A stretch of DNA of 64,000 nt from NCBI GenBank assembly GCA_002269645.1, contig NIVC01000542.1:1-64000 (forward strand), read 5' to 3'. The notes beneath the pieces were generated by a model. It was not told where the DNA came from. It was given only the letters and a program-made list of their open reading frames with translations, and made no database searches. The stretch comes from Macrostomum lignano. Taxonomy: Eukaryota. The position numbers and the translations under genes are program-made. Below, piece by piece: positions 1 to 30,140 of this stretch; positions within the stretch are counted from its first letter, which is position 1, and each line of letters opens with the position of its first letter.

Positions 1-3000
1 TAAGCGCCTGCACTAAGTGTCCACCGGGTAGCTTCGGCAACAAGAAGGGGTCCAAGGAATGCACCAAGTGTCCTGCTGGAAGCGTGTGTACCAACGGCGC
101 CTCCGAGCCGACCAACGGCGCCTCCGAGCCGACCAAGTGCAAGGCGGAACGTTTGCGATCGCCGGATCTAGCAAGTGTACACCGAGTCCACCGGGATCAT
201 TCGTCGACAAGACTGGCTCGACAAGCGCTAAAACCGTGTCCTGCAGGCACGTGGAGCGGTAAAGGCGCGGCCGCGTGTACGAACTGCGAGCCTGGAACAA
301 TCTCAACTGTCGGCTCTTCGGCATGCACCCAGTGCCCGGCAGGAAGCATTGCTGACCGAGCCGGGTTAAGCGCCTGCACTAAGTGTCCACCGGGTAGCTT
401 CGCCAACAAGAAGGGGTCCAAGGAATGCACCAAGTGTCCTGCTGGAAGCGTGTGTACAACGGCGCCTCCGAGCCGACCAAGTGCAAGGCGGGAACGTTTG
501 CGATCGCCGGATCTAGCAAGTGTACACCGAGTCCACCGGGATCATTCGTCGACAAGACTGGCTCGACAAGCGCTAAACCGTGTCCTGCAGGCACGTGGAG
601 CGGTAAAGGCGCGGCCGCGTGTACGAACTGCGGAGCCTGGAACAATCTCAACTGTCGGCTCTTCGGCATGCACCCAGTGCCCGGCAGGAAGCATTGCTGA
701 CCGAGCGGGTTAAGCGCCTGCACTAAGTGTCCACCGGGTAGCTTCGCCAACAAGAAGGGGTCCAAGGAATGCACCAAGTGTCCTGCTGGAAGCGTGTGTA
801 CCAACGGCGCCTCCGAGCCGACCAAGTGCAAGGCGGGAACGTTTGCGATCGCCGGATCTAGCAAGTGTACACCGAGTCCACCGGGATCATTCGTCGACAA
901 GACTGGCTCGACAAGCGCTAAACCGTGTCCTGCAGGCACGTGGAGCGGTAAAGGCGCGGCCGCGTGTACGAACTGCGAGCCTGGAACAATCTCAACTGTC
1001 GGCTCTTCGGCATGCACCCAGTGCCCGGCAGGAAGCATTGCTGACCGAGCCGGGTTAAGCGCCTGCACTAAGTGTCCACCGGGTAGCTTCGCCAACAAGA
1101 AGGGGTCCAAGGAATGCACCAAGTGTCCTGCTGGAAGCGTGTGTACCAACGGCGCCTCCGAGCCGACCAAGTGCAAGGCGGGAACGTTTGCGATCGCCGG
1201 ATCTAGCAAGTGTACACCGAGTCCACCGGGATCATTCGTCGACAAGACTGGCTCGACAAGCGCTAAACCGTGTCCTGCAGGCACGTGGAGCGGTAAAGGC
1301 GCGGCCGCGTGTACGAACTGCGAGCCTGGAACAATCTCAACTGTCGGCTCTTCGGCATGCACCCAGTGCCCGGCAGGAAGCATTGCTGACCGAGCCGGGT
1401 TAAGCGCCTGCACTAAGTGTCCACCGGGTAGCTTCGCCAACAAGAAGGGGTCCAAGGAATGCACCAAGTGTCCTGCTGGAAGCGTGTGTACAACGGCGCC
1501 TCCGAGCCGACCAAGTGCAAGGCGGGAACGTTTGCGATCGCCGGATCTAGCAAGTGTACACCGAGTCCACCGGGATCATTCGTCGACAAGACTGGCTCGA
1601 CAAGCGCTAAACCGTGTCCTGCAGGCACGTGGAGCGGTAAAGGCGCGGCCGCGTGTACGAACTGCGAGCCTGGAACAATCTCAACTGTCGGCTCTTCGGC
1701 ATGCACCCAGTGCCCGGCAGGAAGCATTGCTGACCGAGCCGGGTTAAGCGCCTGCACTAAGTGTCCACCGGGTAGCTTCGCCAACAAGAAGGGGTCCAAG
1801 GAATGCACCAAGTGTCCTGCTGGAAGCGTGTGTACAACGGCGCCTCCGAGCCGACCAAGTGCAAGGCGGGAACGTTTGCGATCGCCGGATCTAGCAAGTG
1901 TACACCGAGTCCACCGGGATCATTCGTCGACAAGACTGGCTCGACAAGCGCTAAACCGTGTCCTGCAGGCACGTGGAGCGGTAAAGGCGCGGCCGCGTGT
2001 ACGAACTGCGAGCCTGGAACAATCTCAACTGTCGGCTCTTCGGCATGCACCCAGTGCCCGGCAGGAAGCATTGCTGACCGAGCCGGGTTAAGCGCCTGCA
2101 CTAAGTGTCCACCGGGTAGCTTCGCCAACAAGAAGGGGTCCAAGGAATGCACCAAGTGTCCTGCTGGAAGCGTGTGTACCAACGGCGCCTCCGAGCCGAC
2201 CAAGTGCAAGGCGGGAACGTTTGCGATCGCCGGATCTAGCAAGTGTACACCGAGTCCACCGGGATCATTCGTCGACAAGACTGGCTCGACAAGCGCTAAA
2301 CCGTGTCCTGCAGGCACGTGGAGCGGTAAAGGCGCGGCCGCGTGTACGAACTGCGAGCCTGGAACAATCTCAACTGTCGGCTCTTCGGCATGCACCCAGT
2401 GCCCGGCAGGAAGCATTGCTGACCGAGCCGGGTTAAGCGCCTGCACTAAGTGTCCACCGGGTAGCTTCGCCAACAAGAAGGGGTCCAAGGAATGCACCAA
2501 GTGTCCTGCTGGAAGCGTGTGTACAACGGCGCCTCCGAGCCGACCAAGTGCAAGGCGGGAACGTTTGCGATCGCCGGATCTAGCAAGTGTACACCGAGTC
2601 CACCGGGATCATTCGTCGACAAGACTGGCTCGACAAGCGCTAAACCGTGTCCTGCAGGCACGTGGAGCGGTAAAGGCGCGGCCGCGTGTACGAACTGCGA
2701 GCCTGGAACAATCTCAACTGTCGGCTCTTCGGCATGCACCCAGTGCCCGGCAGGAAGCATTGCTGACCGAGCCGGGTTAAGCGCCTGCACTAAGTGTCCA
2801 CCGGGTAGCTTCGCCAACAAGAAGGGGTCCAAGGAATGCACCAAGTGTCCTGCTGGAAGCGTGTGTACAACGGCGCCTCCGAGCCGACCAAGTGCAAGGC
2901 GGGAACGTTTGCGATCGCCGGATCTAGCAAGTGTACACCGAGTCCACCGGGATCATTCGTCGACAAGACTGGCTCGACAAGCGCTAAACCGTGTCCTGCA

Positions 3001-6000
3001 GGCACGTGGAGCGGTAAAGGCGCGGCCGCGTGTACGAACTGCGAGCCTGGAACAATCTCAACTGTCGGCTCTTCGGCATGCACCCAGTGCCCGGCAGGAA
3101 GCATTGCTGACCGAGCCGGGTTAAGCGCCTGCACTAAGTGTCCACCGGGTAGCTTCGCCAACAAGAAGGGGTCCAAGGAATGCACCAAGTGTCCTGCTGG
3201 AAGCGTGTGTACCAACGGCGCCTCCGAGCCGACCAAGTGCAAGGCGGGAACGTTTGCGATCGCCGGATCTAGCAAGTGTACACCGAGTCCACCGGGATCA
3301 TTCGTCGACAAGACTGGCTCGACAAGCGCTAAACCGTGTCCTGCAGGCACGTGGAGCGGTAAAGGCGCGGCCGCGTGTACGAACTGCGAGCCTGGAACAA
3401 TCTCAACTGTCGGCTCTTCGGCATGCACCCAGTGCCCGGCAGGAAGCATTGCTGACCGAGCCGGGTTAAGCGCCTGCACTAAGTGTCCACCGGGTAGCTT
3501 CGCCAACAAGAAGGGGTCCAAGGAATGCACCAAGTGTCCTGCTGGAAGCGTGTGTACAACGGCGCCTCCGAGCCGACCAAGTGCAAGGCGGGAACGTTTG
3601 CGATCGCCGGATCTAGCAAGTGTACACCGAGTCCACCGGGATCATTCGTCGACAAGACTGGCTCGACAAGCGCTAAACCGTGTCCTGCAGGCACGTGGAG
3701 CGGTAAAGGCGCGGCCGCGTGTACGAACTGCGAGCCTGGAACAATCTCAACTGTCGGCTCTTCGGCATGCACCCAGTGCCCGGCAGGAAGCATTGCTGAC
3801 CGAGCCGGGTTAAGCGCCTGCACTAAGTGTCCACCGGGTAGCTTCGCCAACAAGAAGGGGTCCAAGGAATGCACCAAGTGTCCTGCTGGAAGCGTGTGTA
3901 CAACGGCGCCTCCGAGCCGACCAAGTGCAAGGCGGGAACGTTTGCGATCGCCGGATCTAGCAAGTGTACACCGAGTCCACCGGGATCATTCGTCGACAAG
4001 ACTGGCTCGACAAGCGCTAAACCGTGTCCTGCAGGCACGTGGAGCGGTAAAGGCGCGGCCGCGTGTACGAACTGCGAGCCTGGAACAATCTCAACTGTCG
4101 GCTCTTCGGCATGCACCCAGTGCCCGGCAGGAAGCATTGCTGACCGAGCGGGTTAAGCGCCTGCACTAAGTGTCCACCGGGTAGCTTCGCCAACAAGAAG
4201 GGGTCCAAGGAATGCACCAAGTGTCCTGCTGGAAGCGTGTGTACAACGGCGCCTCCGAGCCGACCAAGTGCAAGGCGGGAACGTTTGCGATCGCCGGATC
4301 TAGCAAGTGTACACCGAGTCCACCGGGATCATTCGTCGACAAGACTGGCTCGACAAGCGCTAAACCGTGTCCTGCAGGCACGTGGAGCGGTAAAGGCGCG
4401 GCCGCGTGTACGAACTGCGAGCCTGGAACAATCTCAACTGTCGGCTCTTCGGCATGCACCCAGTGCCCGGCAGGAAGCATTGCTGACCGAGCGGGTTAAG
4501 CGCCTGCACTAAGTGTCCACCGGGTAGCTTCGCCAACAAGAAGGGGTCCAAGGAATGCACCAAGTGTCCTGCTGGAAGCGTGTGTACAACGGCGCCTCCG
4601 AGCCGACCAAGTGCAAGGCGGGAACGTTTGCGATCGCCGGATCTAGCAAGTGTACACCGAGTCCACCGGGATCATTCGTCGACAAGACTGGCTCGACAAG
4701 CGCTAAACCGTGTCCTGCAGGCACGTGGAGCGGTAAAGGCGCGGCCGCGTGTACGAACTGCGAGCCTGGAACAATCTCAACTGTCGGCTCTTCGGCATGC
4801 ACCCAGTGCCCGGCAGGAAGCATTGCTGACCGAGCGGGTTAAGCGCCTGCACTAAGTGTCCACCGGGTAGCTTCGCCAACAAGAAGGGGTCCAAGGAATG
4901 CACCAAGTGTCCTGCTGGAAGCGTGTGTACAACGGCGCCTCCGAGCCGACCAAGTGCAAGGCGGGAACGTTTGCGATCGCCGGATCTAGCAAGTGTACAC
5001 CGAGTCCACCGGGATCATTCGTCGACAAGACTGGCTCGACAAGCGCTAAACCGTGTCCTGCAGGCACGTGGAGCGGTAAAGGCGCGGCCGCGTGTACGAA
5101 CTGCGAGCCTGGAACAATCTCAACTGTCGGCTCTTCGGCATGCACCCAGTGCCCGGCAGGAAGCATTGCTGACCGAGCGGGTTAAGCGCCTGCACTAAGT
5201 GTCCACCGGGTAGCTTCGCCAACAAGAAGGGGTCCAAGGAATGCACCAAGTGTCCTGCTGGAAGCGTGTGTACGAACGGCGCCTCCGAGCCGACCAAGTG
5301 CAAGGCGGGAACGTTTGCGATCGCCGGATCTAGCAAGTGTACACCGAGTCCACCGGGATCATTCGTCGACAAGACTGGCTCGACAAGCGCTAAACCGTGT
5401 CCTGCAGGCACGTGGAGCGGTAAAGGCGCGGCCGCGTGTACGAACTGCGAGCCTGGAACAATCTCAACTGTCGGCTCTTCGGCATGCACCCAGTGCCCGG
5501 CAGGAAGCATTGCTGACCGAGCTGGGTTAAGCGCCTGCACTAAGTGTCCACCGGGTAGCTTCGCCAACAAGAAGGGGTCCAAGGAATGCACCAAGTGTCC
5601 TGCTGGAAGCGTGTGTACGAACGGCGCCTCCGAGCCGACCAAGTGCAAGGCGGGAACGTTTGCGATCGCCGGATCTAGCAAGTGTACACCGAGTCCACCG
5701 GGATCATTCGTCGACAAGACTGGCTCGACAAGCGCTAAACCGTGTCCTGCAGGCACGTGGAGCGGTAAAGGCGCGGCCGCGTGTACGAACTGCGAGCCTG
5801 GAACAATCTCAACTGTCGGCTCTTCGGCATGCACCCAGTGCCCGGCAGGAAGCATTGCTGATCGAGCTGGGTTAAGCGCCTGCACTAAGTGTCCACCGGG
5901 TAGCTTCGCAACAAGAAGGGGTCCAAGGAATGCACCAAGTGTCCTGCTGGAAGCGTGTGTACGAACGGCGCCTCCGAGCCGACCAAGTGCAAGGCGGGAA

Positions 6001-9000
6001 CGTTTGCGATCGCCGGATCTAGCAAGTGTACACCGAGTCCACCGGGATCATTCGTCGACAAGACTGGCTCGACAAGCGCTAAACCGTGTCCTGCAGGCAC
6101 GTGGAGCGGTAAAGGCGCGGCCGCGTGTACGAACTGCGAGCCTGGAACAATCTCAACTGTCGGCTCTTCGGCATGCACCCAGTGCCCGGCAGGAAGCATT
6201 GCTGATCGAGCTGGGTTAAGCGCCTGCACTAAGTGTCCACCGGGTAGCTTCGCAACAAGAAGGGGTCCAAGGAATGCACCAAGTGTCCTGCTGGAAGCGT
6301 GTGTACGAACGGCGCCTCCGAGCCGACCAAGTGCAAGGCGGGAACGTTTGCGATCGCCGGATCTAGCAAGTGTACACCGAGTCCACCGGGATCATTCGTC
6401 GACAAGACTGGCTCGACAAGCGCTAAACCGTGTCCTGCAGGCACGTGGAGCGGTAAAGGCGCGGCCGCGTGTACGAACTGCGAGCCTGGAACAATCTCAA
6501 CTGTCGGCTCTTCGGCATGCACCCAGTGCCCGGCAGGAAGCATTGCTGATCGAGCTGGGTTAAGCGCCTGCACTAAGTGTCCACCGGGTAGCTTCGCCAA
6601 CAAGAAGGGGTCCAAGGAATGCACCAAGTGTCCTGCTGGAAGCGTGTGTACGAACGGCGCCTCCGAGCCGACCAAGTGCAAGGCGGGAACGTTTGCGATC
6701 GCCGGATCTAGCAAGTGTACACCGAGTCCACCGGGATCATTCGTCGACAAGACTGGCTCGACAAGCGCTAAACCGTGTCCTGCAGGCACGTGGAGCGGTA
6801 AAGGCGCGGCCGCGTGTACGAACTGCGAGCCTGGAACAATCTCAACTGTCGGCTCTTCGGCATGCACCCAGTGCCCGGCAGGAAGCATTGCTGATCGAGC
6901 TGGGTTAAGCGCCTGCACTAAGTGTCCACCGGGTAGCTTCGCAAACAAGAAGGGGTCCAAGGAATGCACCAAGTGTCCTGCTGGAAGCGTGTGTACGAAC
7001 GGCGCCTCCGAGCCGACCAAGTGCAAGGCGGGAACGTTTGCGATCGCCGGATCTAGCAAGTGTACACCGAGTCCACCGGGATCATTCGTCGACAAGACTG
7101 GCTCGACAAGCGCTAAACCGTGTCCTGCAGGCACGTGGAGCGGTAAAGGCGCGGCCGCGTGTACGAACTGCGAGCCTGGAACAATCTCAACTGTCGGCTC
7201 TTCGGCATGCACCCAGTGCCCGGCAGGAAGCATTGCTGATCGAGCTGGGTTAAGCGCCTGCACTAAGTGTCCACCGGGTAGCTTCGCCAACAAGAAGGGG
7301 TCCAAGGAATGCACCAAGTGTCCTGCTGGAAGCGTGTGTACGAACGGCGCCTCCGAGCCGACCAAGTGCAAGGCGGGAACGTTTGCGATCGCCGGATCTA
7401 GCAAGTGTACACCGAGTCCACCGGGATCATTCGTCGACAAGACTGGCTCGACAAGCGCTAAACCGTGTCCTGCAGGCACGTGGAGCGGTAAAGGCGCGGC
7501 CGCGTGTACGAACTGCGAGCCTGGAACAATCTCAACTGTCGGCTCTTCGGCATGCACCCAGTGCCCGGCAGGAAGCATTGCTGATCGAGCTGGGTTAAGC
7601 GCCTGCACTAAGTGTCCACCGGGTAGCTTCGCAACAAGAAGGGGTCCAAGGAATGCACCAAGTGTCCTGCTGGAAGCGTGTGTACGAACGGCGCCTCCGA
7701 GCCACCAAGTGCAAGGCGGGAACGTTTGCGATCGCCGGATCTAGCAAGTGTACACCGAGTCCACCGGGATCATTCGTCGACAAGACTGGCTCGACAAGCG
7801 CTAAACCGTGTCCTGCAGGCACGTGGAGCGGTAAAGGCGCGGCCGCGTGTACGAACTGCGAGCCTGGAACAATCTCAACTGTCGGCTCTTCGGCATGCAC
7901 CCAGTGCCCGGCAGGAAGCATTGCTGACCGAGCTGGGTTAAGCGCCTGCACTAAGTGTCCACCGGGTAGCTTCGCAAACAAGAAGGGGTCCAAGGAATGC
8001 ACCAAGTGTCCTGCTGGAAGCGTGTGTACGAACGGCGCCTCCGAGCCGACCAAGTGCAAGGCGGGAACGTTTGCGATCGCCGGATCTAGCAAGTGTACAC
8101 CGAGTCCACCGGGATCATTCGTCGACAAGACTGGCTCGACAAGCGCTAAACCGTGTCCTGCAGGCACGTGGAGCGGTAAAGGCGCGGCCGCGTGTACGAA
8201 CTGCGAGCCTGGAACAATCTCAACTGTCGGCTCTTCGGCATGCACCCAGTGCCCGGCAGGAAGCATTGCTGATCGAGCTGGGTTAAGCGCCTGCACTAAG
8301 TGTCCACCGGGTAGCTTCGCAAACAAGAAGGGGTCCAAGGAATGCACCAAGTGTCCTGCTGGAAGCGTGTGTACGAACGGCGCCTCCGAGCCACCAAGTG
8401 CAAGGCGGGAACGTTTGCGATCGCCGGATCTAGCAAGTGTACACCGAGTCCACCGGGATCATTCGTCGACAAGACTGGCTCGACAAGCGCTAAACCGTGT
8501 CCTGCAGGCACGTGGAGCGGTAAAGGCGCGGCCGCGTGTACGAACTGCGAGCCTGGAACAATCTCAACTGTCGGCTCTTCGGCATGCACCCAGTGCCCGG
8601 CAGGAAGCATTGCTGACCGAGCTGGGTTAAGCGCCTGCACTAAGTGTCCACCGGGTAGCTTCGCAAACAAGAAGGGGTCCAAGGAATGCACCAAGTGTCC
8701 TGCTGGAAGCGTGTGTACGAACGGCGCCTCCGAGCCGACCAAGTGCAACGCGGGAACGTTTGCGATCGCCGGATCTAGCAAGTGTACACCGAGTCCACCG
8801 GGATCATTCGTCGACAAGACTGGCTCGACAAGCGCTAAACCGTGTCCTGCAGGCACGTGGAGCGGTAAAGGCGCGGCCGCGTGTACGAACTGCGAGCCTG
8901 GAACAATCTCAACTGTCGGCTCTTCGGCATGCACCCAGTGCCCGGCAGGAAGCATTGCTGACCGAGCTGGGTTAAGCGCCTGCACTAAGTGTCCACCGGG

Positions 9001-10430
9001 TAGCTTCGCAAACAAGAAGGGGTCCAAGGAATGCACCAAGTGTCCTGCTGGAAGCGTGTGTACGAACGGCGCCTCCGAGCCGACCAAGTGCAAGGCGGGA
9101 ACGTTTGCGATCGCCGGATCTAGCAAGTGTACACCGAGTCCACCGGGATCATTCGTCGACAAGACTGGCTCGACAAGCGCTAAACCGTGTCCTGCAGGCA
9201 CGTGGAGCGGTAAAGGCGCGGCCGCGTGTACGAACTGCGAGCCTGGAACAATCTCAACTGTCGGCTCTTCGGCATGCACCCAGTGCCCGGCAGGAAGCAT
9301 TGCTGATCGAGCTGGGTTAAGCGCCTGCACTAAGTGTCCACCGGGTAGCTTCGCCAACAAGAAGGGGTCCAAGGAATGCACCAAGTGTCCTGCTGGAAGC
9401 GTGTGTACGAACGGCGCCTCCGAGCCGACCAAGTGCAACGCGGGAACGTTTGCGATCGCCGGATCTAGCAAGTGTACACCGAGTCCACCGGGATCATTCG
9501 TCGACAAGACTGGCTCGACAAGCGCTAAACCGTGTCCTGCAGGCACGTGGAGCGGTAAAGGCGCGGCCGCGTGTACGAACTGCGAGCCTGGAACAATCTC
9601 AACTGTCGGCTCTTCGGCATGCACCCAGTGCCCGGCAGGAAGCATTGCTGATCGAGCTGGGTTAAGCGCCTGCACTAAGTGTCCACCGGGTAGCTTCGCC
9701 AACAAGAAGGGGTCCAAGGAATGCACCAAGTGTCCTGCTGGAAGCGTGTGTACGAACGGCGCCTCCGAGCCCACCAAGTGCAAGGCGGGAACGTTTGCGA
9801 TCGCCGGATCTAGCAAGTGTACACCGAGTCCACCGGGATCATTCGTCGACAAGACTGGCTCGACAAGCGCTAAACCGTGTCCTGCAGGCACGTGGAGCGG
9901 TAAAGGCGCGGCCGCGTGTACGAACTGCGAGCCTGGAACAATCTCAACTGTCGGCTCTTCGGCATGCACCCAGTGCCCGGCAGGAAGCATTGCTGATCGA
10001 GCTGGGTTAAGCGCCTGCACTAAGTGTCCACCGGGTAGCTTCGCAAACAAGAAGGGGTCCAAGGAATGCACCAAGTGTCCTGCTGGAAGCGTGTGTACGA
10101 ACGGCGCCTCCGAGCCCACCAAGTGCAAGGCGGGAACGTTTGCGATCGCCGGATCTAGCAAGTGTACACCGAGTCCACCGGGATCATTCGTCGACAAGAC
10201 TGGCTCGACAAGCGCTAAACCGTGTCCTGCAGGCACGTGGAGCGGTAAAGGCGCGGCCGCGTGTACGAACTGCGAGCCTGGAACAATCTCAACTGTCGGC
10301 TCTTCGGCATGCACCCAGTGCCCGGCAGGAAGCATTGCTGATCGAGCTGGGTTAAGCGCCTGCACTAAGTGTCCACCGGGTAGCTTCGCCAACAAGAAGG
10401 GGTCCAAGGAATGCACCAAGTGTCCTGCTG
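1..10430 (+). repeat. Coding tandem array, 345-bp unit, about 30 copies
   Basis: Shadow ORFs recur at exact 345-bp spacing (7038/7383, 8760/9105/9450/9795/10140). Units differ only at a handful of sites. Confidence 0.97.
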
Positions 10431-11801
10431 GATATTTTTCTTCGACTTTGAATTCAATAGAATGCACCCCTAGTCCTGCTGGCTATTTTATAAATGGAGT
10501 CGGTTCGACCTCCTACAATCCTTGTCCCGTAGGCACCTGGAGTGGACTTGGTTCAAGTGCGTGTACTGCCTGCATCCCTGGATCATTTTCCTCGTCTGCT
10601 GGATCTTCTTCTTGCAGGCGATGTTCTCCTGGAACTTTTGCTAATTTTAACGGCTCAAGTGAGTGCAAACCTTGTCCGCCTGGCAGATACAGCGGCCATA
10701 GCGGTGCCTCTTTGTGCGAGTTATGCAATCCAGGCAGCTGGAGCCGTTCGGGTGCTTTGTCCTGCCGCTTGTGCCCCAAGGGTCATTTTTCGCCTGCTGG
10801 ATCAAGGCACTGCATTCAATGTTCGGGGGGCACTTTTGCAGATCGGGAGGGCACCGCTAGCTGCACGATGTGCCCCCCTGGCAGCGTGGCTGAGGAGCCT
10901 GGCTCTACGCGTTGCAGTCTTTGCCAGGTAGGGCAATACGCGCCAAGCCCTGGTTCAGACAAATGCTTTGATTGTTTCCCTGGCTACTTCACGAACAAAA
11001 CTGGTAGTAGCACCTGCACGGCCTGCCCCCCTGGCACGCGATCCAGTATTCAGCGGGCTACCGAATGCATACAGTGCAACTTGGAGAACAATTTGTCATA
11101 TCGATCTGGTATGAGCATATGCGACGAGTGCCCCGAGTTCGCCCCGACACTCACAAAATATAAATGTTATGGTGAGCTGATTTGATAAATTTATTTTCCG
11201 TTTTACTTTTTTGTAGTTAGCTTTTTGGGGACATTGTCAACGACTTGACCTGACAGGAGTTTATTGCTAATCGAGCGTCACAAGTTGTGGCCTGAGGCAG
11301 TCCCTGTGCCAGTAGGACGGGATACCAGCTTTGGAGCTATTTTTAGACATCTGTTCGGGACGGTACTCATAATTTACTTATATTGGAACTTATAAAAACG
11401 TGAATAAAAAATTATATCCACTTTCCCACCGACATTTAGATCGAGTTAATACCGAGTGCTCTTCTAAAGACGGCATATCGAAAACGTGCAGGTATTCTGT
11501 AGACTTGAATGTGTGGTCGTACGGAGTCGCTTACGCTGATGGTCCCGGGCGTGACTTTCTGTTTTACACGTTTTCGAAGACAGTTGATATAAAAAAGTTT
11601 CTTTTAATGGCAAAGTCAAACGCCAGAAGCAGCGCAGAGAACTTGAATTTCCGATGCCTGCCATCCGGCAAGGAGAAACACTTCCCAACGTTCAGGCGGT
11701 ACAATAACTTTGAATGCGCGAATGCGCAAGCAATGGAGGTCACGCCGAAGCCATATCACAAGGTCATCATTATGGAGTTGGCGTTTTTCTATAAAGAGTA
11801 G
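1..11801 (+). CDS. Giant cysteine-rich repeat protein (CxxCxxG / ephrin-receptor-like, GCC2_GCC3-type repeats), 5'-truncated, with a probable spliced C-terminal beta-sandwich domain
   Basis: About 30 copies of a 115-aa unit (CTNGASEPTKCKAGTFAIAG...CTKCPAGSV) run to about 10430, then diverged CxxCxPG repeats to 11171. There is a phase-1 donor G|GTGAGC at 11172 and a phase-compatible acceptor CATTTAG| at 11439. The last exon 11440-11801 ends ...IMELAFFYKE*, and AATAAA lies at 11837-11842. Single-base indels break the frame within 1-8400 and are probably consensus errors. The splice junction is inferred. Confidence 0.75.
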
Positions 11802-12074
11802 GCAAACGCCGTGCGAAACTGAGTATGCGCTGGATTAATAAAATACACAAGACTTGAATGTATAATCAAAATTTTGATTTTGCCTTTCGAGTGAGTCACT
11901 CGCATTTTATACTGTGCTGCTAACGACCACCAAGGTCATACAACTTACAGATTTGGTTTATAGCTTGCACATTCGTGGGGACATTTAATGTGAAAGCGTT
12001 TAGTGGTGAAACAGTTCATCGAGGATCCCGACAGTACGTTTGCACACGAGCAAATCCCACCGACATGTAGATCC

Positions 12075-13854: not shown

Positions 13855-16028
13855 TCACTTCTTAGCCGCCGGCGGCGCCTTGCTGCCATAGAGAATGCGG
13901 TTCATCTGCGTGTTCTGCTCGTCCATCTTGGCGTTCGTCTTGTCCGTCTTCACCGACATTCGCTCCAGCTGCGAGTTCTGCCTGTCGATCTCGCCGCCCA
14001 GCCCCATGGCCAGCTGCTTCAGCCGGCCCATGCCATGCTCCATCTCGCCCAGGTTTTCGCTGAACGCCCTGTCGTAGGAGGTCTGCGGCTGCTGCCGCTG
14101 CTGCTGCTGCTGGTAGCCGGCGGCCCCCGTGGCTGCGGCGCCAAAGGATGCCGCGGGCTCCTGGCGGCGAACGTGGAATGGAACAGCTGCTGTGAGACTG
14201 GAGACTGGACGCTCAGCAGTTCTCACCATTGAGACACTCAGCAGTCTCCCCATTGAGACACTCGGCAGTCTCCCCATTGAGACACTCAGCAGTCTCCCCA
14301 TTGAGACACTCAGCAGTCTCCCCATTGAGACACTCAGTCTCCCCATTGAGACACTCAGCAGTCTCCCCATTGAGACACTCAGTCTCCCCATTGAGACGCT
14401 CAGCAGTTCTCACCATTGAGACACTCAGCAGTCTCCCCATTGAGACACTCGGCAGTCTCCCCATTGAGACACTCAGCAGTCTCACCATTGAGACACTCAG
14501 CAGTCTCCCCATTGAGACACTCAGCAGTCTCACCATTGAGACACTCAGCAGTCTCACCATTGAGACACTCAGCAGTCTCACCATTGAGACACTCAGCAGT
14601 CTCACCATTGAGACACTCAGCAGTCTCACCATTGAGACACTCAGCAGTCTCACCATTGAGACACTCAGCAGTCTCACCATTGAGACACTCAGCAGTCTCC
14701 CCATTGAGACACTCAGTCTCCCCATTGAGACACTCAGCAGTCTCACCATTGAGACACTCAGCAGTCTCCCCATTGAGACACTCAGCAGTCTCCCCATAGA
14801 CACTCAGCAGTCTCGCCAGAAACCCAAATCTCACATGGGACACTAATAAATTTCAATTAGAGACACAGGAAACCCGAAATCTCAAAGTCCCCAAAGCTCA
14901 CCTGGGCAGCGACTCTCCTGGCCTCGGCGGTGGAGCTGACGGCCATGGCCTTGTCAAGGCTGGCGCCGGCGGGCTCGTACTGCTGCGCTGGCTGCTGGCG
15001 CTTCTTGGCCGAGTCGCCGCGGAACCAGTTCTTGACGCCGCCGAACATCGAGCTCAGGCTATTGATGTGGCCCTGCGATTCCTTCTGGACGGCCTCGATG
15101 TGGTCCAGCTTCTCCTCTGTTCGGTTCAGCACCTCGCCCTGCCTGACCAGCTCTTGGGCGGTGTCCACGCCCATGCTCTCGCTGCTGTAAATTGACTGAA
15201 GAGCCCGCCGTTGCGTCTCCAGCTGCCGGCTTTGCGAGGCCTGCAAGCCGGCATCAAAGGTGCACAAGCACATGTAATTTGAGTCTGCAGTGTTTAACTT
15301 CTCCTAGCCTCGCATACTGATGCATTCCCCAATCACAGAAGCCTCCCCCAGTCTTCTCCTCCCTTCGCTCCGGTCGTCTTATCCTCTGTCGATTTAAAAC
15401 TCGTCTCGACTCTTATTTTTGTCCCTTGCCTGTCCCTCTCCTAGTCTTATCTACTTCCAGACTCCCTCCACCCCATCTGCCCCAGTCTCCCTCCACCCCA
15501 TCTGCCCCAGTCTCCCTCCACCCCATCTGCCCCAGTCTCCCTCCACCCCATCTGCCCCAGACTCCCTCCACCCCATCTGCCCCAGACTCCCTCCACCCCA
15601 TCTGCCCCAGACTCCCTCCATCCCATCTGCCCCAGACTCCCTCCACCCCATCTGCCCCAGTCTCCCTCCACCCCATCTGCCCCAGTCTCCCTCCACCCCA
15701 TCTGCCCCAGACTCCCTCCACCCCATCTGCCCCAGTCTCCCTCCACCCCATCTGCCCCAGTCTCCCTCCACCCCATCTGCCCCAGACTCCCTCCACCCCA
15801 TCTCGCCAGTCTTCCCACCGATCCTCCGCGGTGACAGCAGCCGCTCACCTGCACCTGCTGCTGCACAGTCGACCGGCCTTCATAGCCGTAACCGCCGCCA
15901 GGATTGTAGGAGCCGAAGCTGCCAGCCTGCCGGTCCTGCCCAGTCTCGAACGGGTTCCGGCCGCCGCCGCCGCCAAGACTAAAGGGATTTTTATCCTCTG
16001 TGTAGAACGGGTTTCTGCTGTCAGACAT
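13855..16028 (-). CDS. SNAP29: Synaptosomal-associated protein 29 (Qbc-SNARE), about 274 aa
   Basis: Exons 16028-15849, 15240-14902 and 14160-13855, all phase 0 with GT-AG introns. N-terminal NPF motifs, first SNARE helix (QRRALQSIYSSESMGVDTAQELVRQGEVL), second SNARE helix (ENLGEMEHGMGRLKQLAMGLGGEIDRQNSQL), and no palmitoylation Cys cluster. Confidence 0.88.
14205..14810. repeat. Minisatellite, 24-bp unit (ACTCAGCAGTCTCCCCATTGAGAC) with 21-bp variants, SNAP29 intron 2
   Basis: Direct reading; about 25 copies. Confidence 0.95.
15460..15805. repeat. Minisatellite, 25-bp unit (CCCCATCTGCCCCAGTCTCCCTCCA), SNAP29 intron 1
   Basis: Direct reading; about 14 copies; G-rich on the sense (minus) strand. 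Confidence 0.95.
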
Positions 16029-17178: not shown

Positions 17179-20101
17179 TCATTTTTCTGTCCTGCCAGCC
17201 AGCCGCTTAGCGAAGGTTTGCGCTACGATGAGCGGGAAGGCCAGCGTGGCGTCCGAGTAGACCTTCACAGGCCGCGCGTCCAGCCGGATTTTGCCCCAGC
17301 TGACGGCCTCGTCGGGCCTGGCGCCGGAGTCGCTGCCATCGAACTCCTGGCCGGTGTTGATGAACACGGCAAAGTTGGCCCCGTTGCGCATGAGGTTGGC
17401 ATTGCAGGTGTGGTGCTTCACGACCCCGCCGCCCAGCACTATCATGCCGGTGTTGCGGGCGAACACCGCCTGGCTGTTCACCAGCCGGATGTCCTCGATG
17501 GCGTCCAGGACGAGGCCGGGACTGCGGTAGCTGTGAAAGTACAGCACGTCGCCGCACGCGCCGTCTGTGATGGACGGGCAGAACACAGGGATGCCGTTGC
17601 GGTGGCACCAGTAGAGCACCGACTCGGGGCTGTTGATCTCTCTGGAAGAATATATTGGCATTTTGCGTTTTGGCTACGTAAACAGTAGTTCAATAGCACT
17701 AATCTACATAAGTCACTCATTAGTCTCACCCATGAGTCGCTCAATAGTCTCACCCATGAGTCACTCAATAGTCTCACCCATGAGTCACTCAATAGTCTCA
17801 CCCATGAGACTATCATCCATGACAGGAATGCATAAAGGACTCAGGACAGGAATGCATAAAGGACTCAGGACAGGAATGGATAAAGGACTCAGGACAGGAA
17901 TGGATAACGGACTCAGCACAGGAATGCATAAAGGACTCAGGACAGGAATGCATAAAGGACTCAGGACAGGAATGCATAAAGGACTCAGGACAGGAATGCA
18001 TAAAGGACTCAGGACAGGAATGCATAACGGACTCAGGACAGGAATGCATAAAGGACTCAGGACAGGAATGCATAAAGGACTCAGGACAGGAATGCATGAA
18101 GAACTCAGGACAGGAATGCATGAAGGGCTCAGGACAGGAATGCATAAAGGACTCAGCACAGGAATGCATGAAGGACTCAGGACAGGAATGCATAAAGGAC
18201 TCAGGACAGGAATGCATAAGGACTCAGGACAGGAATGCATAAAGGACTCAGGACAGGAATGCATAAAGGACTCAGGACAGGAATGCATGGAGGACTCAGG
18301 ACAGGAATGCATGAAGGACTCAGGACAGGAATGCATGAAGGACTCAGGACAGGAATGCATGAAGGACTCAGGACAGGAATGCATGAAGGACTCAGGACAG
18401 GAATGCATGAAGGGCTCAGGACAGGAATGCATAAAGGACTCAGGACAGGAATGCATAAAGGACTCAGGACAGGAATGCATGAAGGACTCAGGACAGGAAT
18501 GCATGAAGGGCTCAGGACAGGAATGCATAAAGGACTCAGGACAGGAATGCATGAAGGACTCAGGACAGGAATGCATGATGGACTCAGGACAGGAATGCAT
18601 AAAGGACTCAGGACAGGAACGCATGCAAGTCTCAGTTAAGAAGAGCCCCACCTGCCTAGGCGGTGAATGAGCTTAGATGGAGTCCAGTTGATTTTCTGCT
18701 CATTCTGCTCAGCCAGCATGACGTCAAGGATGGGCACCAGCCAGGACTCGAACGCGCAGTAGTTTTTGTTCGGCACCAGCAGGTTGCCGATCCGGTTGAT
18801 GCCGGCCTGACGCAGCTGCGCGCCCGGCCAGCGATGGAAGTCGCCGATGTAGGTGGGGTGCATGCACTTGATGAGGTCCTCCTCCACGGCGCCGCCGGTG
18901 GTGACGAGCACGTCAACCAGGTTGTGCTCGACCAGGTAGCGAATTGACTCGCGTACGCCGCTGGAGATCATGTTGGACGTGAAGGCCAAGAATATGGTGC
19001 AGTTCGTGCGGGCCCGGCCGTATGGATTCGGGTTGGACACCTCCGAGTCTCCATTGGCGGCTGCGGCACCCGCGGCTTCCTCCGGCTTGGCAAACTTGCA
19101 GTCGAGCATTCGGTTGATTTCGTCTATGGCCAGCGACAGGTTGGTGCCCTGCGGGTGAATCAATCGTATCTACCTGCCGATCTACAGTATCTACCTGCTG
19201 ATCTATTTACAGTATCTAACTGCCAATCTTCTACAGCATCTACCTGCCGATCTACAGTATCTACCTGCCGATCTACAGTATCTACCTGCCGATCTACAGT
19301 ATCTACCTGCCGATCTACAGTATCTACCTGCCGATCTACAGTATCTACCTGCCGATCTACAGTATCTACCTGCCGATCTACAGTATCTACCTGCCGATCT
19401 ACTTACAGTATCTACCTGCCGATCTATTTACAGTATCTAACTGCCGATCTACAGTATCTACCTGCCGACCTATCTACAGTATCTAACTGCCGATCTACAG
19501 TATCTACCTGCCGATCTACAGTATCTACCTGCCGATCTGCGGTATCTAACTGGCCGATCTATTTACAGTATCTAACTGCCAATCTACAGTATCTACCTGC
19601 CGACCTATCTACAGTATCTAACTGCCGATCTACAGTATCTACCTGCCGATCTGCGGTATCTAACTGCCGATCTATTTACAGTATCTAACTGCCAATCTAC
19701 AGTATCTACCTGCCGACCTATCTACAGTATCTAACTGCCGATCTACAGTATCTACCTGCCGATCTGCGGTATCTAACTGCCGATCTATTTACAGTATCTA
19801 ACTGCCAATCTACAGTATCTACCTGCCGACCTATCTACAGTATCTAACCGCCCATTTAACTACTGAACTGCAGCATCTAACTACTGAACTGCAGCACCTA
19901 CAGGGTAAGTAAGCAGAAAAGGTAAACATGAAGACTTACCTGAAAGCCTGTGGTGGCAAATGATTTCATCAGTGCTTCCAGTGACAGCCCGTCAGGCGCA
20001 TTGAAGTCGTGACCCTTGACCGGCGTGTCCACGTCTTCTGGCAGCTGGCCGGACTGCATCAGCACAGCCTGCTGGCTGATCTGCGGCGGCTGCTGAGACA
20101 T
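17179..20101 (-). CDS. DHPS: Deoxyhypusine synthase, 373 aa
   Basis: Exons 20101-19940, 19148-18652 and 17641-17179 sum to 1122 nt. Family motifs: TTGFQ|[69 protein letters not shown]. Confidence 0.95.
17715..18630. repeat. Two adjacent 24-bp minisatellites in DHPS intron 2 (TAGTCTCACCCATGAGTCACTCAA about 4 copies; GACAGGAATGCATAAAGGACTCAG about 33 copies)
   Basis: Direct reading. Confidence 0.95.
19167..19845. repeat. Minisatellite, 21-bp unit (GTATCTACCTGCCGATCTACA) with length variants, DHPS intron 1
   Basis: Direct reading; about 30 copies. Confidence 0.95.
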
Positions 20102-21233: not shown

Positions 21234-22515
21234 TCAGCGCGACTTCCGATCCGCATCCGGACAGCCAGCGGCCAGCCGTCCTCGCCGGCTCTGCAGCCAG
21301 TTAACCGCGGGAGCCGCGGCGGCCAGCGGGCAGGCCAGGCAGACGGAGATCAGCGCTGCAGCCGGCTGGCTCGGAGCTTCGTGGCCGGGCAGCGCGGCTT
21401 CGACGCAGCCGCCGAGCAGCGGAGCGAGCAGGCGGGCCAGCGAGTTCACCGACTGCGAGGCGGCCATAGCGTCGGTCAGGGCGGCCTCGGGACAGGCGAA
21501 GGACGAGCTGACAAGCCGGCAGCGCAGCAGGGTCGGGTAGGCGTCCCTGGCCAGGCCGTTGAAGAAGCTCAGCGGGGCCTGGGCGGCGGCGAACTGTGCC
21601 AGGCTGGTGACGAGACCCGAGGAGGCCAGTGAGAGGCAGGCGGCCTGGCCGGTGGCTGCCAGCAGCACCAGGCGGTCGGGGCCGAGGCCAGTGGCCGACT
21701 GCAGCGGCCCGACGACTAGGCCGGACAGCAGGCCGGAGACGGCGCCCAGCGAGGTGGCGAGGCCCGCGCCGGCGGACGAGGCAGAGAAGCGCGAGTTCAG
21801 CGCCAGGGCGAAGTTGTGCCGGAACAGCTGAGCGGCCAGCGACATCGGCAGCTGCAGCGTCAGCAGGTCGGCCACGGCCAGCGCCGAGGAGGTCGGAGTC
21901 GGCCTAGAACTCCGACCGGATGACTTCGGCGCCACCTCGGCAGCTGGCGCTGCTGCCGACACCGCGGTCGCGATGCCGACAGTCAAAAAGCCGACGCAGG
22001 CGAGGCCGGTCACCAGGCGAAAGCCGCCAAAGTCGAAGGCGACCCCGCCGACCATGGGCCCGACGATGAAGCCGAGGGAGGACAGCGTCGAGTGCGAGCC
22101 GAGCAGACGGATCCGGCGACTTTCGCTGACGTCAGGCGACGAGGCGAGCTGCGTCCGCTGCAGAGTCTGGGTGTGCTTGAACAGAGCCGTGATGAGGCGG
22201 AGGCTGGCTAGGCTGGGGAAGTCGGGCGGCCCGAGGCCCAACGCCAGGTAGCCCGCGGCGGAGGCCACGCAGCAAAGGCTGTGGGCGTTGCGGGCGCCGA
22301 ACCGGCGAACCAGGCGGCCCTGGGAGGAGGGAGGGCGCGAATTGGGAAGCCTAACTGAGCTGGGCTGGGAATGGGAAACTGAGACCAAGACTGACAGACT
22401 CAAGAGAAACCATCGGGTAGGGTTGCTCGCTTAACAACAATCAAGCAATGAAGCAATGAAGCAATGTTGATCAAGAGAAACCAGCAGACACAGACAGGCA
22501 GGCAGGCAGGAAGGC

Positions 22516-22548
<33 letters not shown>

Positions 22549-22556
22549 GGCCGGCA

Positions 22557-22601
<45 letters not shown>

Positions 22602-23095
22602 ACAGACACAGACAGGCAGACAGACAGACAGACAGACAGGCAGGCAGGCAGGCAGGCAGACAGACAGGCAGACAGACAGACAGACAGACAGGCAGACAGA
22701 CAGACAGGCAGGCAGGCAGACAGACACAGACAGGCAGACAGACAGGCAGACAGGCAGACAGGCAGACAGACAGACAGGCAGGCAGGCAGGCAGGCAGACA
22801 GACAGACAGGCAGACAGACAGGCAGACAGACAGGCAGACAGACAGACAGGCAGATAGGCAGGCAGGCAGACAGACACAGACAGGCAGACAGACAGGCAGA
22901 CAGGCAGACAGGCAGGAAGGCAGACAGACAGACAGACAGGCAGGCAGGCAGACAGGTAGGCAGGCAGGCAGGCAGGCAGGCAGACAGACACAGACAGGCA
23001 GACAGACAGACAGACAGACAGACAGACAGGCAGGCAGGCAGGCAGGCAGACAGACAGACAGACAGGCAGACAGACAGACAGACAAACAGACAGGC

Positions 23096-23128
<33 letters not shown>

Positions 23129-23135
23129 GGCAGGC

Positions 23136-23176
<41 letters not shown>

Positions 23177-23670
23177 GGCAGACAGACAGACAGACAGACA
23201 GGCAGGCAGACAGGCAGACAGACAAACAGACAGACAGGCAGACAGACACACAGACAGACAGGCAGACAGACAGTACACAGCAAAAGACTCACGCAAATCG
23301 AGCTTGAAAAAATCTGCACAGCTCCGTACTCGGACTCTGAAAAATCAAAGTTTCCCAGTAATGTCTCACTAAGATTGAAGCAACACGAATACTACTAATA
23401 GTAGTAAAATATTCGAGTAGTTTATTGGCTTACGAAACAATCCCATGTAGAACGGAGCCATGTCGATTTGTTTCAGGTGAATGGGCAGGCAGGTGATGAC
23501 CATGCTGACGCAGAACAGGTCCTGAGCAAATTACGAGTAAATGAAGGTAAGATAAGGCCGATGAGCCACGCTACAGCGCACTTGAGCAGTGAACTCACCG
23601 CAAAGCCTGCCAGGCACAGTAGAAACTGCCGCCTGTCAGATTGCGCCAGCTCAGCGACAAATAAGCCGGC
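21234..23670 (-). CDS. MFSD9: Major facilitator superfamily transporter, MFSD9-like, about 430 aa; no genomic ATG found
   Basis: Exons 23670-23599, 23521-23434, 23336-23293 and 22319-21234 are phase-consistent (1290 nt). They give AGLFVAELAQSDRRQFLLCLAGFA|DLFCVSMVITCLPIHLKQ...GLF|QSEYGAVQIFSSSIC|GRLVRRFG...LGFIVGPMVGG, which matches the MFSD9 N-terminal pattern as I recall it (DLFGVSM...YGILQLFSS) and MFS motif C. Confidence 0.75.
22485..23275. repeat. (CAGA/CAGG)n microsatellite, MFSD9-like intron 3
   Basis: Direct reading. Confidence 0.97.
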
Positions 23671-24934: not shown

Positions 24935-25556
24935 CATAGCAGAGATGGGATAACTCAGTGTGGCAGAGATGGGATAACTCACTGTGGCAGAGATGGGATA
25001 ACTCAGTGTGGCAGAGATGGGATAACTCAGTGTGGCAGAGATGGGATAACTCACTGTGGCAGAGATGGGATAACTCACTGTGGCAGAGATGGGATAACTC
25101 AGTGTGGCAGAGATGGGATAACTCAGTGTGGCAGAGATGGGATAACTCTATAGCAGAGATGGGATAACTCACTGTGGCAGAGATGGGATAACTCAGTGTG
25201 GCAGAGATGGGATAACTCACTGTGGCAGAGATGGGATAACTCAGTGTGGCAGAGATGGGATAACTCACTGTGGCAGAGATGGGATAACTCACTGTGGCAG
25301 AGATGGGATAACTCACTGTGGCAGAGATGGGATAACTCAGTGTGGCAGAGATGGGATAATTCACTGTGGCAGAGATGGGATAATTCACTGTGGCAGAGAT
25401 GGGATAATTCACTGTGGCAGAGATGGGATAATTCACTGTGGCAGAGATGGGATAACTCAGTGTGGTAGAGATGGGATAATTCACTGTGGCAGAGATGGGA
25501 TAATTCACTGTGGCAGAGATGGGATAACTCACTGTGGCAGAGATGGGATAACTCAC
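24935..25556. repeat. Minisatellite, 24-bp unit (GGCAGAGATGGGATAACTCACTGT), about 26 copies
   Basis: Direct reading. Confidence 0.95.
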
Positions 25557-26101: not shown

Positions 26102-27688
26102 TCAAGCGGCGGCTCCGTCCTCCCTGGCCAGAACCACGGCACAGCGGCAGGGCAGGTACAGCTGCAGCGAGTTGCCGCGGCCGTCAAAGTCGCCAGGCTG
26201 GGTGAAGAATTGCGTATTCTCGTCCACTCGGTTGTGTCCGCCGAACTCCGGCCGGTCGGTGTTGAGCACAATCCGGTAGCGTCCGGGCTCGGCCACGCCC
26301 AGCCGATAGTCCGTGAAGCTGCTGGCCCAGTGCCAGTTGAAGGCGAACAGCAGGCCGCCCCGCTCGAAGGCCACCACCTTGTCGCCGTTGTGCTTCCTGG
26401 GCGCAAAGTTCGTTTTGGCGCAAAATTGCAACCTTTGGCGCATTTTTAACCTAAATTAGTCTGTTCAAAGTGCTCTAATGCGACCTCTTTGCCGCTCCAA
26501 TGCGGCCTGTTTTGGTGCTCTAATGCGGCCTGTTTTGGTGCTCTAATGCGGCCTGTTTTGGTGCTCTAATGCGGCCTGTTTTGGTGCTCTAATGCGGCCT
26601 GTTTTGGTGCTCTAATGCGGTCTGTTTTGGTGCTCTAATGCGGCCTTTTTCGGAATTTCCATATTAGACGCATCTCACTGAATCGCCGCCCATTCACCTG
26701 GTAATGTAACCGGGACCCCGGTGCAGCCAGCCGAACCGGGCCTCGGCCAGGTTCATAGCCGCATCAAAATTGTTGAGATGCTGATAGCGCAGCAGTTTGT
26801 CGTCAACCAGGTTGAACTGCCGCCTGGCATAATAGTAAGACTCGCCGTTGCCAAGCCGGGGGAAGTCCAGCCACTCGGGGTGCCCGAACTCGTTGCCAAT
26901 GAAGTTCAGGTAGCCCTCGCCGCCAAGAGCGTGCGTGATCAGGCGGATCATCTTGTGCAGGGCGATGCCCCGGTCGATGATGAGGGACGGATCGGACAGG
27001 GTGGACATGTGGGTGTACATCTCCTTGTCCATCAGCCAGAAGGCGATGGTTTTGTCACCGACCAGAGCCTGATCGTGCGACTCGGCGTAGGCGATGGCCT
27101 TCTCGCCGTAGCGCCGGTTCTCCAGCTCGAAGCAGATCTTGGCCACGTCCCAGTCCTGGTCGGGGACGCCCTTGAGCAGCTTGATCCACAGGTCGGGCAC
27201 GGCCATGGCCAGCCGGTAGTCGAAGCCGTAGCCGCCGTGCTCAACTGGCCGGCAGAGGCCGGGCAGGCCGCTGACCTCCTCGGCCACGGTGATGACAAAG
27301 GGGTGCGCCTTGTGCAGCAGCCAGTTGGCCAGGGCCAAGTACGTGAGGGACTCGGTGTCCACGCTCATGCCGAAGTACTCGTCGTAGTGGCCGGAGAAGT
27401 TGTGGTTGAGGCCGTGGTGGTGGTACAGCATGGACATGCAGCCATCGAAGCGGAATCCGTCGAAGCCGTACTCCTCGATCCACCAGGTCAGGTTGGACAG
27501 CAGGAAGCGGAGCACCTGCCAATTGTGAATGTTGGCACATGTACAAACCTTGCATTACTGCTTTCAGTAACTGATCTCTCACACAAAGCGCTAGTACACC
27601 TGTATCATACGTATCGTACATGTACATCAAAATGAGGATTAAAATACTGAAAACTGTTAGACGAATAGACACTAGGACACAGAGAGCC

Positions 27689-27742
<54 letters not shown>

Positions 27743-27758
27743 TCAGACAGACAGACAG

Positions 27759-27790
<32 letters not shown>

Positions 27791-29513: not shown

Positions 29514-29556
29514 GGCGGGCTGCAACTGCAGGACTTTGGGACATGAGCGGCTGACT

Positions 29557-29726
29557 ATCTGTCTGCCTGTCTGTCTGTCTGTCTGTCTGCCTGTCTGTCT
29601 GTCTGTCTGATTGTCTGTCTGTCTGATTGTCTGTCTGTCTGTCTGATTGTCTGTCTGTCTGTCTGATTGTCTGTCTGTCTGTCTGATTGTCTGTCTGTCT
29701 GTCTGATTGCCTGTCTGTCTGTCTGA

Positions 29727-29757
<31 letters not shown>

Positions 29758-30140
29758 ATTGTCTGTCTGTCTGTCTGATTGTCTGTCTGTCTGTCTGATT
29801 GTCTGTCTGATTGTCTGATTGTCTGTCTGATTGTCTGTCTGTGTATATGTGTCTGCCTGCCTGTCTCTGTCTGTCTGTCTGTCTGTCTGTCTGGCTGTCT
29901 GTCTGTCTGTCTGATTGTCTGTCTGTCTGTCTGATTGTCTGTCTGTCTGTCTGATTGTCTGTCTGCCTGTCTGTCTGTCTGCCTGTCTGTCTGTCTGTCT
30001 GTCTGCCTGTCTGTCTGTCTGCCTGTCTGTCTGTCGCCTGTCTGTCTGTCTGTCTGTCTGCCTGTCTGCCTGTCTGTCGCCTGTCTGTCTGTCTGCCTGT
30101 CTGTCTGTCTGCCTGTCTGTCTGTCTGCCTGTCTGTCTGT
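29557..30140. repeat. (TCTG)n microsatellite directly upstream of GBE1
   Basis: Direct reading. Confidence 0.97.

Follow-up and report, generated by a model that had tools for sequence, protein, structure and literature searches.

A near-identical array of ephrin-receptor-like modules at the 3′ end of a Macrostomum lignano gene and the one-base indels that interrupt its reading frame

A 64,000-nucleotide stretch of the Macrostomum lignano genome (contig NIVC01000542.1 of GenBank assembly GCA_002269645.1, positions 1 to 64,000 of the forward strand; hereafter the window) opens with a 345-bp tandem repeat that encodes a cysteine-rich module, and this locus raises the question of whether the repeat belongs to a gene for a giant protein or is a coding satellite whose frame has been lost. 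A first-pass annotation, made from the DNA letters, had proposed a protein of more than 3,800 residues forming a long disulfide-stabilised extracellular rod with a carbohydrate-binding head, and had compared it with the adhesive proteins of flatworms. The repeat, the 3′ gene structure, the domain family and the rod stood up in the present analysis; the continuous giant open reading frame (ORF) is not present in the sequence as assembled, and the carbohydrate-binding head and the kinship with known adhesives gained no support. The region represents the 3′ end of a genuine Macrostomum lignano protein-coding gene, consisting of a giant exon, with at least 30 units followed by diverged repeats, and a short last exon. 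On balance, we favour the reading that this 3′ end encodes a very large (at least ~3,850 residues) secreted disulfide-laddered protein with a structural role, and that the indels interrupting its frame are artefactual. The features of the gene are as follows.

1–113, plus strand: partial unit, the last 113 nt of one more 345-bp repeat, which aligns to consensus positions 233–345
114–10444, plus strand: 30 tandem 345-bp units, each encoding a 115-residue module with 12 Cys, without introns (Tandem Repeats Finder, unit-by-unit alignment and Pfam PF07699)
10445–11171, plus strand: diverged cysteine-rich repeats, ~242 residues with 27 Cys and three N-x-S/T sequons (translation; Pfam PF07699, E 8e-29)
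10557–10841, plus strand: in-frame GT..AG stretch of 285 nt, treated as an intron in the database protein models A0A1I8H4D0 and A0A1I8JM00 (alignment blocks 1–107 and 203–432, junction codon A|AT = N)
11172–11439, plus strand: last intron, 268 nt, GTGAG...TTTAG, phase 1 (seen in the sequence; splice reproduced in M. lignano database proteins)
11440–11801, plus strand: last exon, 120 codons, encoding a C-terminal domain with four Cys and ending in TAG at 11799–11801
11837–11842, plus strand: AATAAA polyadenylation signal, 36 nt past the stop codon

A single array was resolved by Tandem Repeats Finder at window positions 114–10432 (period 345, 30.0 copies, 99% matches), in agreement with the roughly 30 near-identical 115-residue modules of the first-pass annotation, and with the piece at the edge included it extends over positions 1–10444 (345 bp × 30.3 copies, 99% identical). 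Since bases 1–113 are the end of another unit, the array, and with it the 5′ part of the gene, continues past the left window edge, as had also been proposed. The consensus unit encodes in one frame a 115-residue module, NGASEPTKCKAGTFAIAGSSKCTPSPPGSFVDKTGSTSAKPCPAGTWSGKGAAACTNCEPGTISTVGSSACTQCPAGSIADRAGLSACTKCPPGSFANKKGSKECTKCPAGSVCT, in which the 12 Cys lie in CxxC-type motifs as previously described, and which can be divided by eye into seven CxxC..PxG[ST][FWI] sub-repeats of about 16 residues each; an example peptide of the predicted protein is TGSTSAKPCPAGTWSGK. Of the residues of the module, 10.4% are Cys and 62% are small (G, A, S, T and P); the module carries a net charge of +7 with an isoelectric point of 8.9 and has no N-glycosylation sequon in its sequence, in contrast to the three of the diverged tail. 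When projected on the consensus frame, two units carry K10N and unit 30 differs in its final four residues, where the array passes into the tail; otherwise the unit proteins are identical. The GC content is 60% in the array (1–10444; 0.62 at third codon positions), 53% in the diverged tail and 46% in the last exon, and the higher value of the homogenised array could reflect GC-biased gene conversion during homogenisation. A higher-order structure is seen at window positions 803–5274 (units 3–15): units 3–11 form a three-unit super-repeat of 345 + 344 + 344 bp, with site 345 successively C, deleted and deleted, and units 12–15 are four identical 343-bp units, which indicates that the array was built or homogenised in blocks. 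An Rfam scan of the entire window gave no match.

Downstream of the array, the diverged repeats share the exon and frame of the last array units and are 44% identical to the module. The diverged repeats, the phase-compatible last exon and the poly(A) signal of the first-pass annotation are all present at the positions listed above, and the splice has been reproduced independently. In a protein search, the tail together with the last exon had one close match, a 337-residue M. lignano fragment named 'Ephrin_rec_like domain-containing protein' (UniRef A0A1I8JM00), of which A0A1I8H4D0 is a cluster mate. Of the 337 residues of A0A1I8H4D0 that align with the 3′ end in the window, 336 are identical, whereas A0A1I8JM00 is 98.2% identical; the matches identify the DNA as that of M. 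lignano and indicate that a second copy, an allele or homeolog, exists. Both read ...KYKCY|DRVNTECSS... across the last splice, as predicted from the DNA, and the shared junction therefore reproduces the last intron and exon independently of our prediction. The in-frame stretch at 10557–10841 is either an optional intron or a gene-model artefact. The C-terminus is hydrophilic (...ELAFFYKE), with no transmembrane helix or glycosylphosphatidylinositol (GPI)-type hydrophobic segment in its sequence. Exact-sequence look-ups in public contigs with the last-exon ORF, the matching M. lignano protein and the ORF of a paralog returned nothing. This paralog lies in the same window.

51286–53980, minus strand: two-exon complete paralog of ~870 residues with an intact frame and Ephrin_rec_like repeats (Pfam E 1e-79)

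Its start at 53980 has, as judged by eye, a signal-peptide-like sequence, MNLKYLVLLAMMLAASPCEA, followed by ~170 residues of unique N-terminal sequence, about 12 repeat units of 33 residues (99 bp, 93% identical), a GTAAGT donor, a phase-1 intron, a 141-residue last exon and then AATAAA. The two genes have in common Ephrin_rec_like repeats in one large exon, a phase-1 intron, distantly related last exons with four Cys (23% identity) and an AATAAA signal. They differ in that the paralog has 33-residue units in about 12 copies at 93% identity, a total length of ~870 residues, an unbroken frame and a visible N-terminus.

The continuous protein of more than 3,800 residues has no corresponding ORF in the window, and ~3,850 residues are reached only after conceptual correction of all 23 one-base indels (21 deletions and two insertions) that break the frame of the array, with stop codons after each shift. 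These indels lie just after window bases 145, 230, 458, 632, 705, 1492, 1836, 2525, 2869, 3558, 3902, 4148, 4245, 4491, 4588, 4834, 4931, 5177, 5908, 6252, 7631, 7703 and 8392, and the units, each aligned to the consensus, are 343, 344 or 345 bp in length. The ORF list is consequently a staircase of 100–480-residue ORFs hopping among the three plus-strand frames, with a sole long ORF at 8342–11185 (947 residues); the longest truly in-frame run is 8393–11171 (926 codons), or ~1,046 residues with the last exon added. Frameshifts, which the first-pass annotation had placed only among the outcomes that would speak against its reading, are present and are a main feature of the sequence, and they are read here as artefacts.

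The variation between the units carries this reading. Across units 1–29 there are just six substitution sites (consensus positions 18, 30, 243, 249, 291 and 345), all six of which are third codon positions (p ~0.0014) and five of which are synonymous, and such third-position, mostly synonymous variation points to a coding sequence under constraint and not to a neutral satellite. Twenty recurrent deletions fall at only four sites (345/1, ten times; 248/249, five; 290/291, three; 18, two), where the states are G, C or deleted at 345/1, T, C or deleted at 249, C, A or deleted at 291, and G, C or deleted at 18. All four recurrent deletion sites thus coincide with four of the six variable sites out of 345, with a chance probability of ~3e-8. 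Real deletions that are limited to the synonymous polymorphic sites of a gene under purifying selection make little biological sense. In PacBio consensus calling based on a directed acyclic graph, a node that lacks the support of at least half of the reads receives a negative score and is passed over. The observed deletion pattern would result if a base were omitted from the consensus wherever the reads in the pile-up disagree, and the disagreeing reads could stem from other units, or from collapsed haplotypes or homeologs. The known M. lignano assemblies were made from PacBio continuous long reads (with Canu plus Pilon for Mlig_3_7); simple and tandem repeats make up 15% of the genome, which also has 180 Mb in duplicated blocks that are at least 95% identical (PMC5730564). 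Coding stretches elsewhere in the window are long intact ORFs, namely 746 residues in the paralog, which itself contains the 99-bp coding array at 93% identity, and exons of 494 and 389 residues, so the indels are specific to the near-identical array. Although this is not certain, the 23 indels probably arose during consensus building or polishing, as artefacts of long-read assembly over a near-identical array.

The principal alternative is that the frameshifts are real. The array would then be a coding satellite that became a pseudogene recently and is still being homogenised, a gene dead or dying in which indels were spread by unequal crossing-over. This is consistent with 23 frame-breaking indels in 10.3 kb and with the presence of the same deletion in neighbouring units in a higher-order (C,D,D) pattern, where D is the deleted state, as expected under unequal exchange; each deletion may also be interpreted as a short homopolymer that has contracted, and the databases hold no multi-module protein or transcript-derived model. 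However, substitutions confined to third positions, five of six of them synonymous, are unexpected for a neutral satellite, the placement of four independent real deletions on four of the six variable sites would be the coincidence calculated above, and the tail and last exon have stayed open, spliced and 98–99.7% conserved between two M. lignano copies. We regard a dead or dying gene as unlikely, with the artefact reading clearly the better bet of the two; the array is most likely a constrained coding array with consensus artefacts and not a dead satellite, the intactness of its frame being what we infer from this pattern.

Several observations count against a living giant gene. The frame is closed in the sequence as assembled, and the deleted state at site 345 follows the regular C,D,D pattern three times in units 3–11, which is not expected of random error, so that an artefact would need collapsed copies that disagree in register. 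Both the N-terminus and any signal peptide of the giant gene lie outside the window. Among 5.8 billion database proteins there is none with several of these modules, the gene models found are the two 337-residue fragments only, with no independent support for transcription or translation of the array, and expression, localisation or functional data were not found in the literature searched.

By every test run, the array is a member of the Ephrin_rec_like repeat family. Against Pfam Ephrin_rec_like (PF07699, formerly GCC2_GCC3; gathering cut-off 23.1 bits), two modules score 93.3 bits (E 8e-27), the tail 99.6 bits and the ORF at 8342–11185 295 bits (E 7e-90), in line with the earlier assignment to ephrin-receptor-like/GCC2_GCC3 domains. 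Weaker overlapping Pfam matches to NCD3G, TNFR_ELAPOR1_6th and TNFR_c6 describe the same cysteine-ladder architecture. Long antisense ORFs in the array (for example 8296–10467, 723 residues) were rejected as coding, their only match being a marginal one to a domain of unknown function, compared with 295 bits on the plus strand. Homologues at 30–40% identity are unnamed cysteine-rich repeat proteins from many eukaryotes, and in an alignment of 50 sequences the Cys and Gly columns of the CxxC...G spacing are invariant or nearly so and in register. In literature searches, no papers linking Macrostomum to ephrin-receptor-like or GCC2 domains were found.

In a phmmer search of PDB sequences, the best match was the Chlamydomonas mastigoneme protein MST1 (E 7e-38, residues 1627–1831), followed by ELAPOR1. 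A two-module AlphaFold2 model (window positions 8720–9409), built with the 50-sequence alignment, consists of short β-hairpins and is confident, with a predicted local distance difference test score (pLDDT) of 90.3 and a predicted template modelling score of 0.75; this model check had been suggested for one module and was run here with two. The sole stretch below pLDDT 50 is the module junction, residues 117–130 (ASEPTKCKAGTFAI); in the model, such junctions may act as hinges, or the junction may just be poorly covered by the alignment. When the model was compared with the PDB by Foldseek, MST1 chains were at the top (E 1e-12, TM ~0.7), followed by ELAPOR1, TNF-receptor family ectodomains and the cysteine-rich domains (CRDs) of EphA2 and EphB2. 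The TNFR/Eph-CRD-like disulfide-ladder fold is therefore a predicted one, from AlphaFold2 and Foldseek. In MST1, the cysteine-rich tandem forms a disulfide ladder with a spacing of ~11 Å within a stiff extracellular filament (PMC10602792). With a confident two-module model, and with the MST1 cysteine-ladder rod as the best match in both sequence and fold, the disulfide-stabilised extracellular rod proposed at first is reasonably supported by homology and modelling.

According to this model, each module would fold as a TNFR/Eph-CRD-like ladder of six disulfides, and successive modules would stack end to end into a stiff rod. By analogy with the ~11 Å per rung of MST1, a module would be ~6–7 nm long and the visible part (30 modules) ~200 nm. 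The charge of +7 per module would allow the rod to bind polyanionic glycans or surfaces, and the rod could be a structural element of a secreted matrix, namely mucus, a gland secretion or a surface coat, with the orphan four-Cys domain at its C-terminus as an end piece that would anchor the rod or join rods end to end. The length and function of the rod are derived in this way, and we infer secretion of the giant protein because the paralog in the window has a signal-peptide-like start and the same architecture. In its most specific form, the proposal would be that the flatworm secretes a cationic rod at least 200 nm long, the counterpart in an animal of the mastigoneme-type disulfide-ladder filament, as an undescribed extracellular fibre in the matrix of mucus, rhabdites, glands or ciliated epidermis, and that a fold family known so far from Macrostomum alone caps this rod; this we consider doubtful.

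The last-exon domain (120 residues, four Cys), which had been proposed as a carbohydrate-binding head, has no Pfam, NCBIfam or PDB-sequence match. Three HMMER hits among 1.84 billion representatives (E 4e-5 to 1e-4) were rejected as spurious, since all three proteins are unrelated and repeat internally: one is a Sod_Cu-like repeat protein, another a LysM protein, and the third has no credible domain. The model of the last exon that had been suggested as a check, run with AlphaFold2 on the single sequence, was poor (pLDDT 36) and gave no confident fold. With no family, credible homologue or PDB match, carbohydrate binding by this domain, neither supported nor excluded, is a matter of speculation; the domain is best described as a Macrostomum-restricted orphan domain. 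Its sole plausible relative is the last exon of the paralog (51286–51708, minus strand), 23% identical, for which a word-index search of the protein database found no homologue. The two domains share their position after the repeats, the intron phase, four Cys in register and motifs such as FL.Y.F....V.[IV][KR][KR]. Their alignment score is marginal (z = 2.7; reached by 35 of 2,000 shuffles), and their homology rests mainly on position, intron phase and the four-Cys register.

A role in the duo-gland temporary adhesive of M. lignano, as a glue or as a cohesive fibre in the manner of Mlig-ap1 and Mlig-ap2, is speculation and in our view improbable. With the known adhesive proteins it shares a huge size, repetitiveness, richness in cysteine (10.4%) and a positive charge, but published screens, footprint mass spectrometry and RNA interference named two proteins with different repeats and domains (PMC6410801), and an ephrin-receptor-like protein is unmentioned in the flatworm adhesion papers checked. 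For the same reason, the identification of the giant gene as Mlig-ap1 or Mlig-ap2 themselves was rejected.

Less probable still is the expression of the 3′ part alone, that is, of a ~1,000-residue product from 8393–11171 and the last exon, with the upstream array untranslated or a non-genic repeat. The ORF at 8342–11185 is indeed open for 947 codons and the database models cover the 3′ end alone, but there is no evident signal peptide or plausible start context, and the ATG at 8342 is out of the module frame until the shift at 8392. The upstream units, moreover, code for the same module with synonymous-only variation, and both A0A1I8H4D0 and A0A1I8JM00 begin in the middle of a module, which is typical of truncated models. 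A membrane-anchored variable surface coat protein of the Giardia variant-specific surface protein (VSP) or ciliate surface-antigen type is very improbable: its CxxC repeats and a weak Pfam VSP (PF03302) match in the tail (20.4 bits) are set against a cut-off of 31.4 bits, a C-terminus with no transmembrane helix, CRGKA-like tail or hydrophobic GPI signal, and an animal as the source organism.

The remaining window contains ordinary animal genes with intact exons, in keeping with how the M. lignano genome has been described (PMC5730564). Between 13855 and 38226, such genes follow one another on the minus strand throughout, and a transposase ORF comes after them.

14857–15273, minus strand: possible SNARE-like coiled-coil protein, with no Pfam match at the threshold used
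17179–19163, minus strand: deoxyhypusine synthase
21234–22403, minus strand: major facilitator superfamily (MFS) transporter
26694–29525, minus strand: glucan branching enzyme with CBM48
32631–33335, minus strand: Alba-domain protein
35892–38226, minus strand: ankyrin-DHHC palmitoyltransferase
41632–42597, minus strand: mariner/Tc1-like transposase, a 321-residue ORF with matches to a Mos1-type helix-turn-helix and to DDE_3

The transposase ORF sits in an AT-rich island, a 35% GC block at ~40–48 kb, compared with 50–60% GC in the flanks. From 12075 to 63567, introns and intergenic DNA are full of minisatellites (20–40-bp units, 90–96% identical, 10–40 copies), which matches the repeat-rich M. 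lignano genome. The repeats include the following.

14208–14818, 17821–18624, 24939–25556, 31544–32662 and 58025–58654: examples of minisatellites
22490–23273, 27679–28017 and 29558–30140: long (ACAG)n/(TCTG)n tracts
39230–39794: tandem repeat, 81 bp × 7, 99% identity

The gene adds to a known domain family a new member from a model flatworm, one that is very large and almost unannotated. If its frame is intact, it encodes one of the largest proteins of a model animal for regeneration and bioadhesion, yet this protein is essentially missing from the annotated M. lignano proteome, in which it is represented by two 337-residue fragments only. Because the module is a confidently predicted rigid disulfide ladder that is closest to an extracellular filament rod, the protein is a candidate structural fibre of flatworm secretions and a possible biomaterial lead, as with the Mlig-ap proteins. 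The array also illustrates how near-identical coding genes drop out of annotation, and the position of deletions exactly on synonymous variable sites offers a means of separating consensus artefacts from genuine decay where coding arrays consist of near-identical units.

Compared with other Ephrin_rec_like proteins (ELAPOR1/2, SVEP1, SCUBE and the PCSK5 cysteine-rich region; animals and protists), the giant gene shares the hidden Markov model family, the CxxC...G spacing and the predicted TNFR-like disulfide ladder, whereas the giant gene has a 115-residue super-module of seven sub-repeats, in at least 30 copies at >99% DNA identity in one exon, and it has an orphan 120-residue end domain and no EGF, CUB, sushi or other partner domains in its visible part. 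The proteins Mlig-ap1 and Mlig-ap2 contain KR-rich regions, repeats of 255 and 221 residues, and vWD, TIL, EGF, TSP1, LDLR and C-type lectin domains (PMC6410801). They resemble the giant gene in their origin from M. lignano, giant size, long internal tandem repeats, Cys-rich parts and positive charge (PMC6410801), but their repeat units and domain sets are different, and a kinship with known flatworm adhesives is not supported in the form suggested; no sequence relationship was found, the giant gene is unreported in the adhesive screens, and ap-type domains are absent from it, its Pfam matches being limited to Ephrin_rec_like and overlapping models of the TNFR type. The best solved-structure match by both sequence and fold is MST1 of Chlamydomonas reinhardtii (PDB entries 8tx1, 8wa2 and 9b4h), and a tandem cysteine-rich ladder is common to both. 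MST1 also contains nine Ig-like domains, a polyproline-II helix rich in hydroxyproline and a helix at its C-terminus, none of which is seen in the visible ~3,850 residues of the giant gene, the C-terminus of which has no proline-rich tract and carries the 120-residue, four-Cys domain instead. The identity between the two is only ~25%, MST1 has no near-identical tandem modules, and the giant gene, known here from its sequence, ends in an unrelated domain. The giant gene is thus not an orthologue of MST1, but of the systems compared it works most like the MST1 rod segment.

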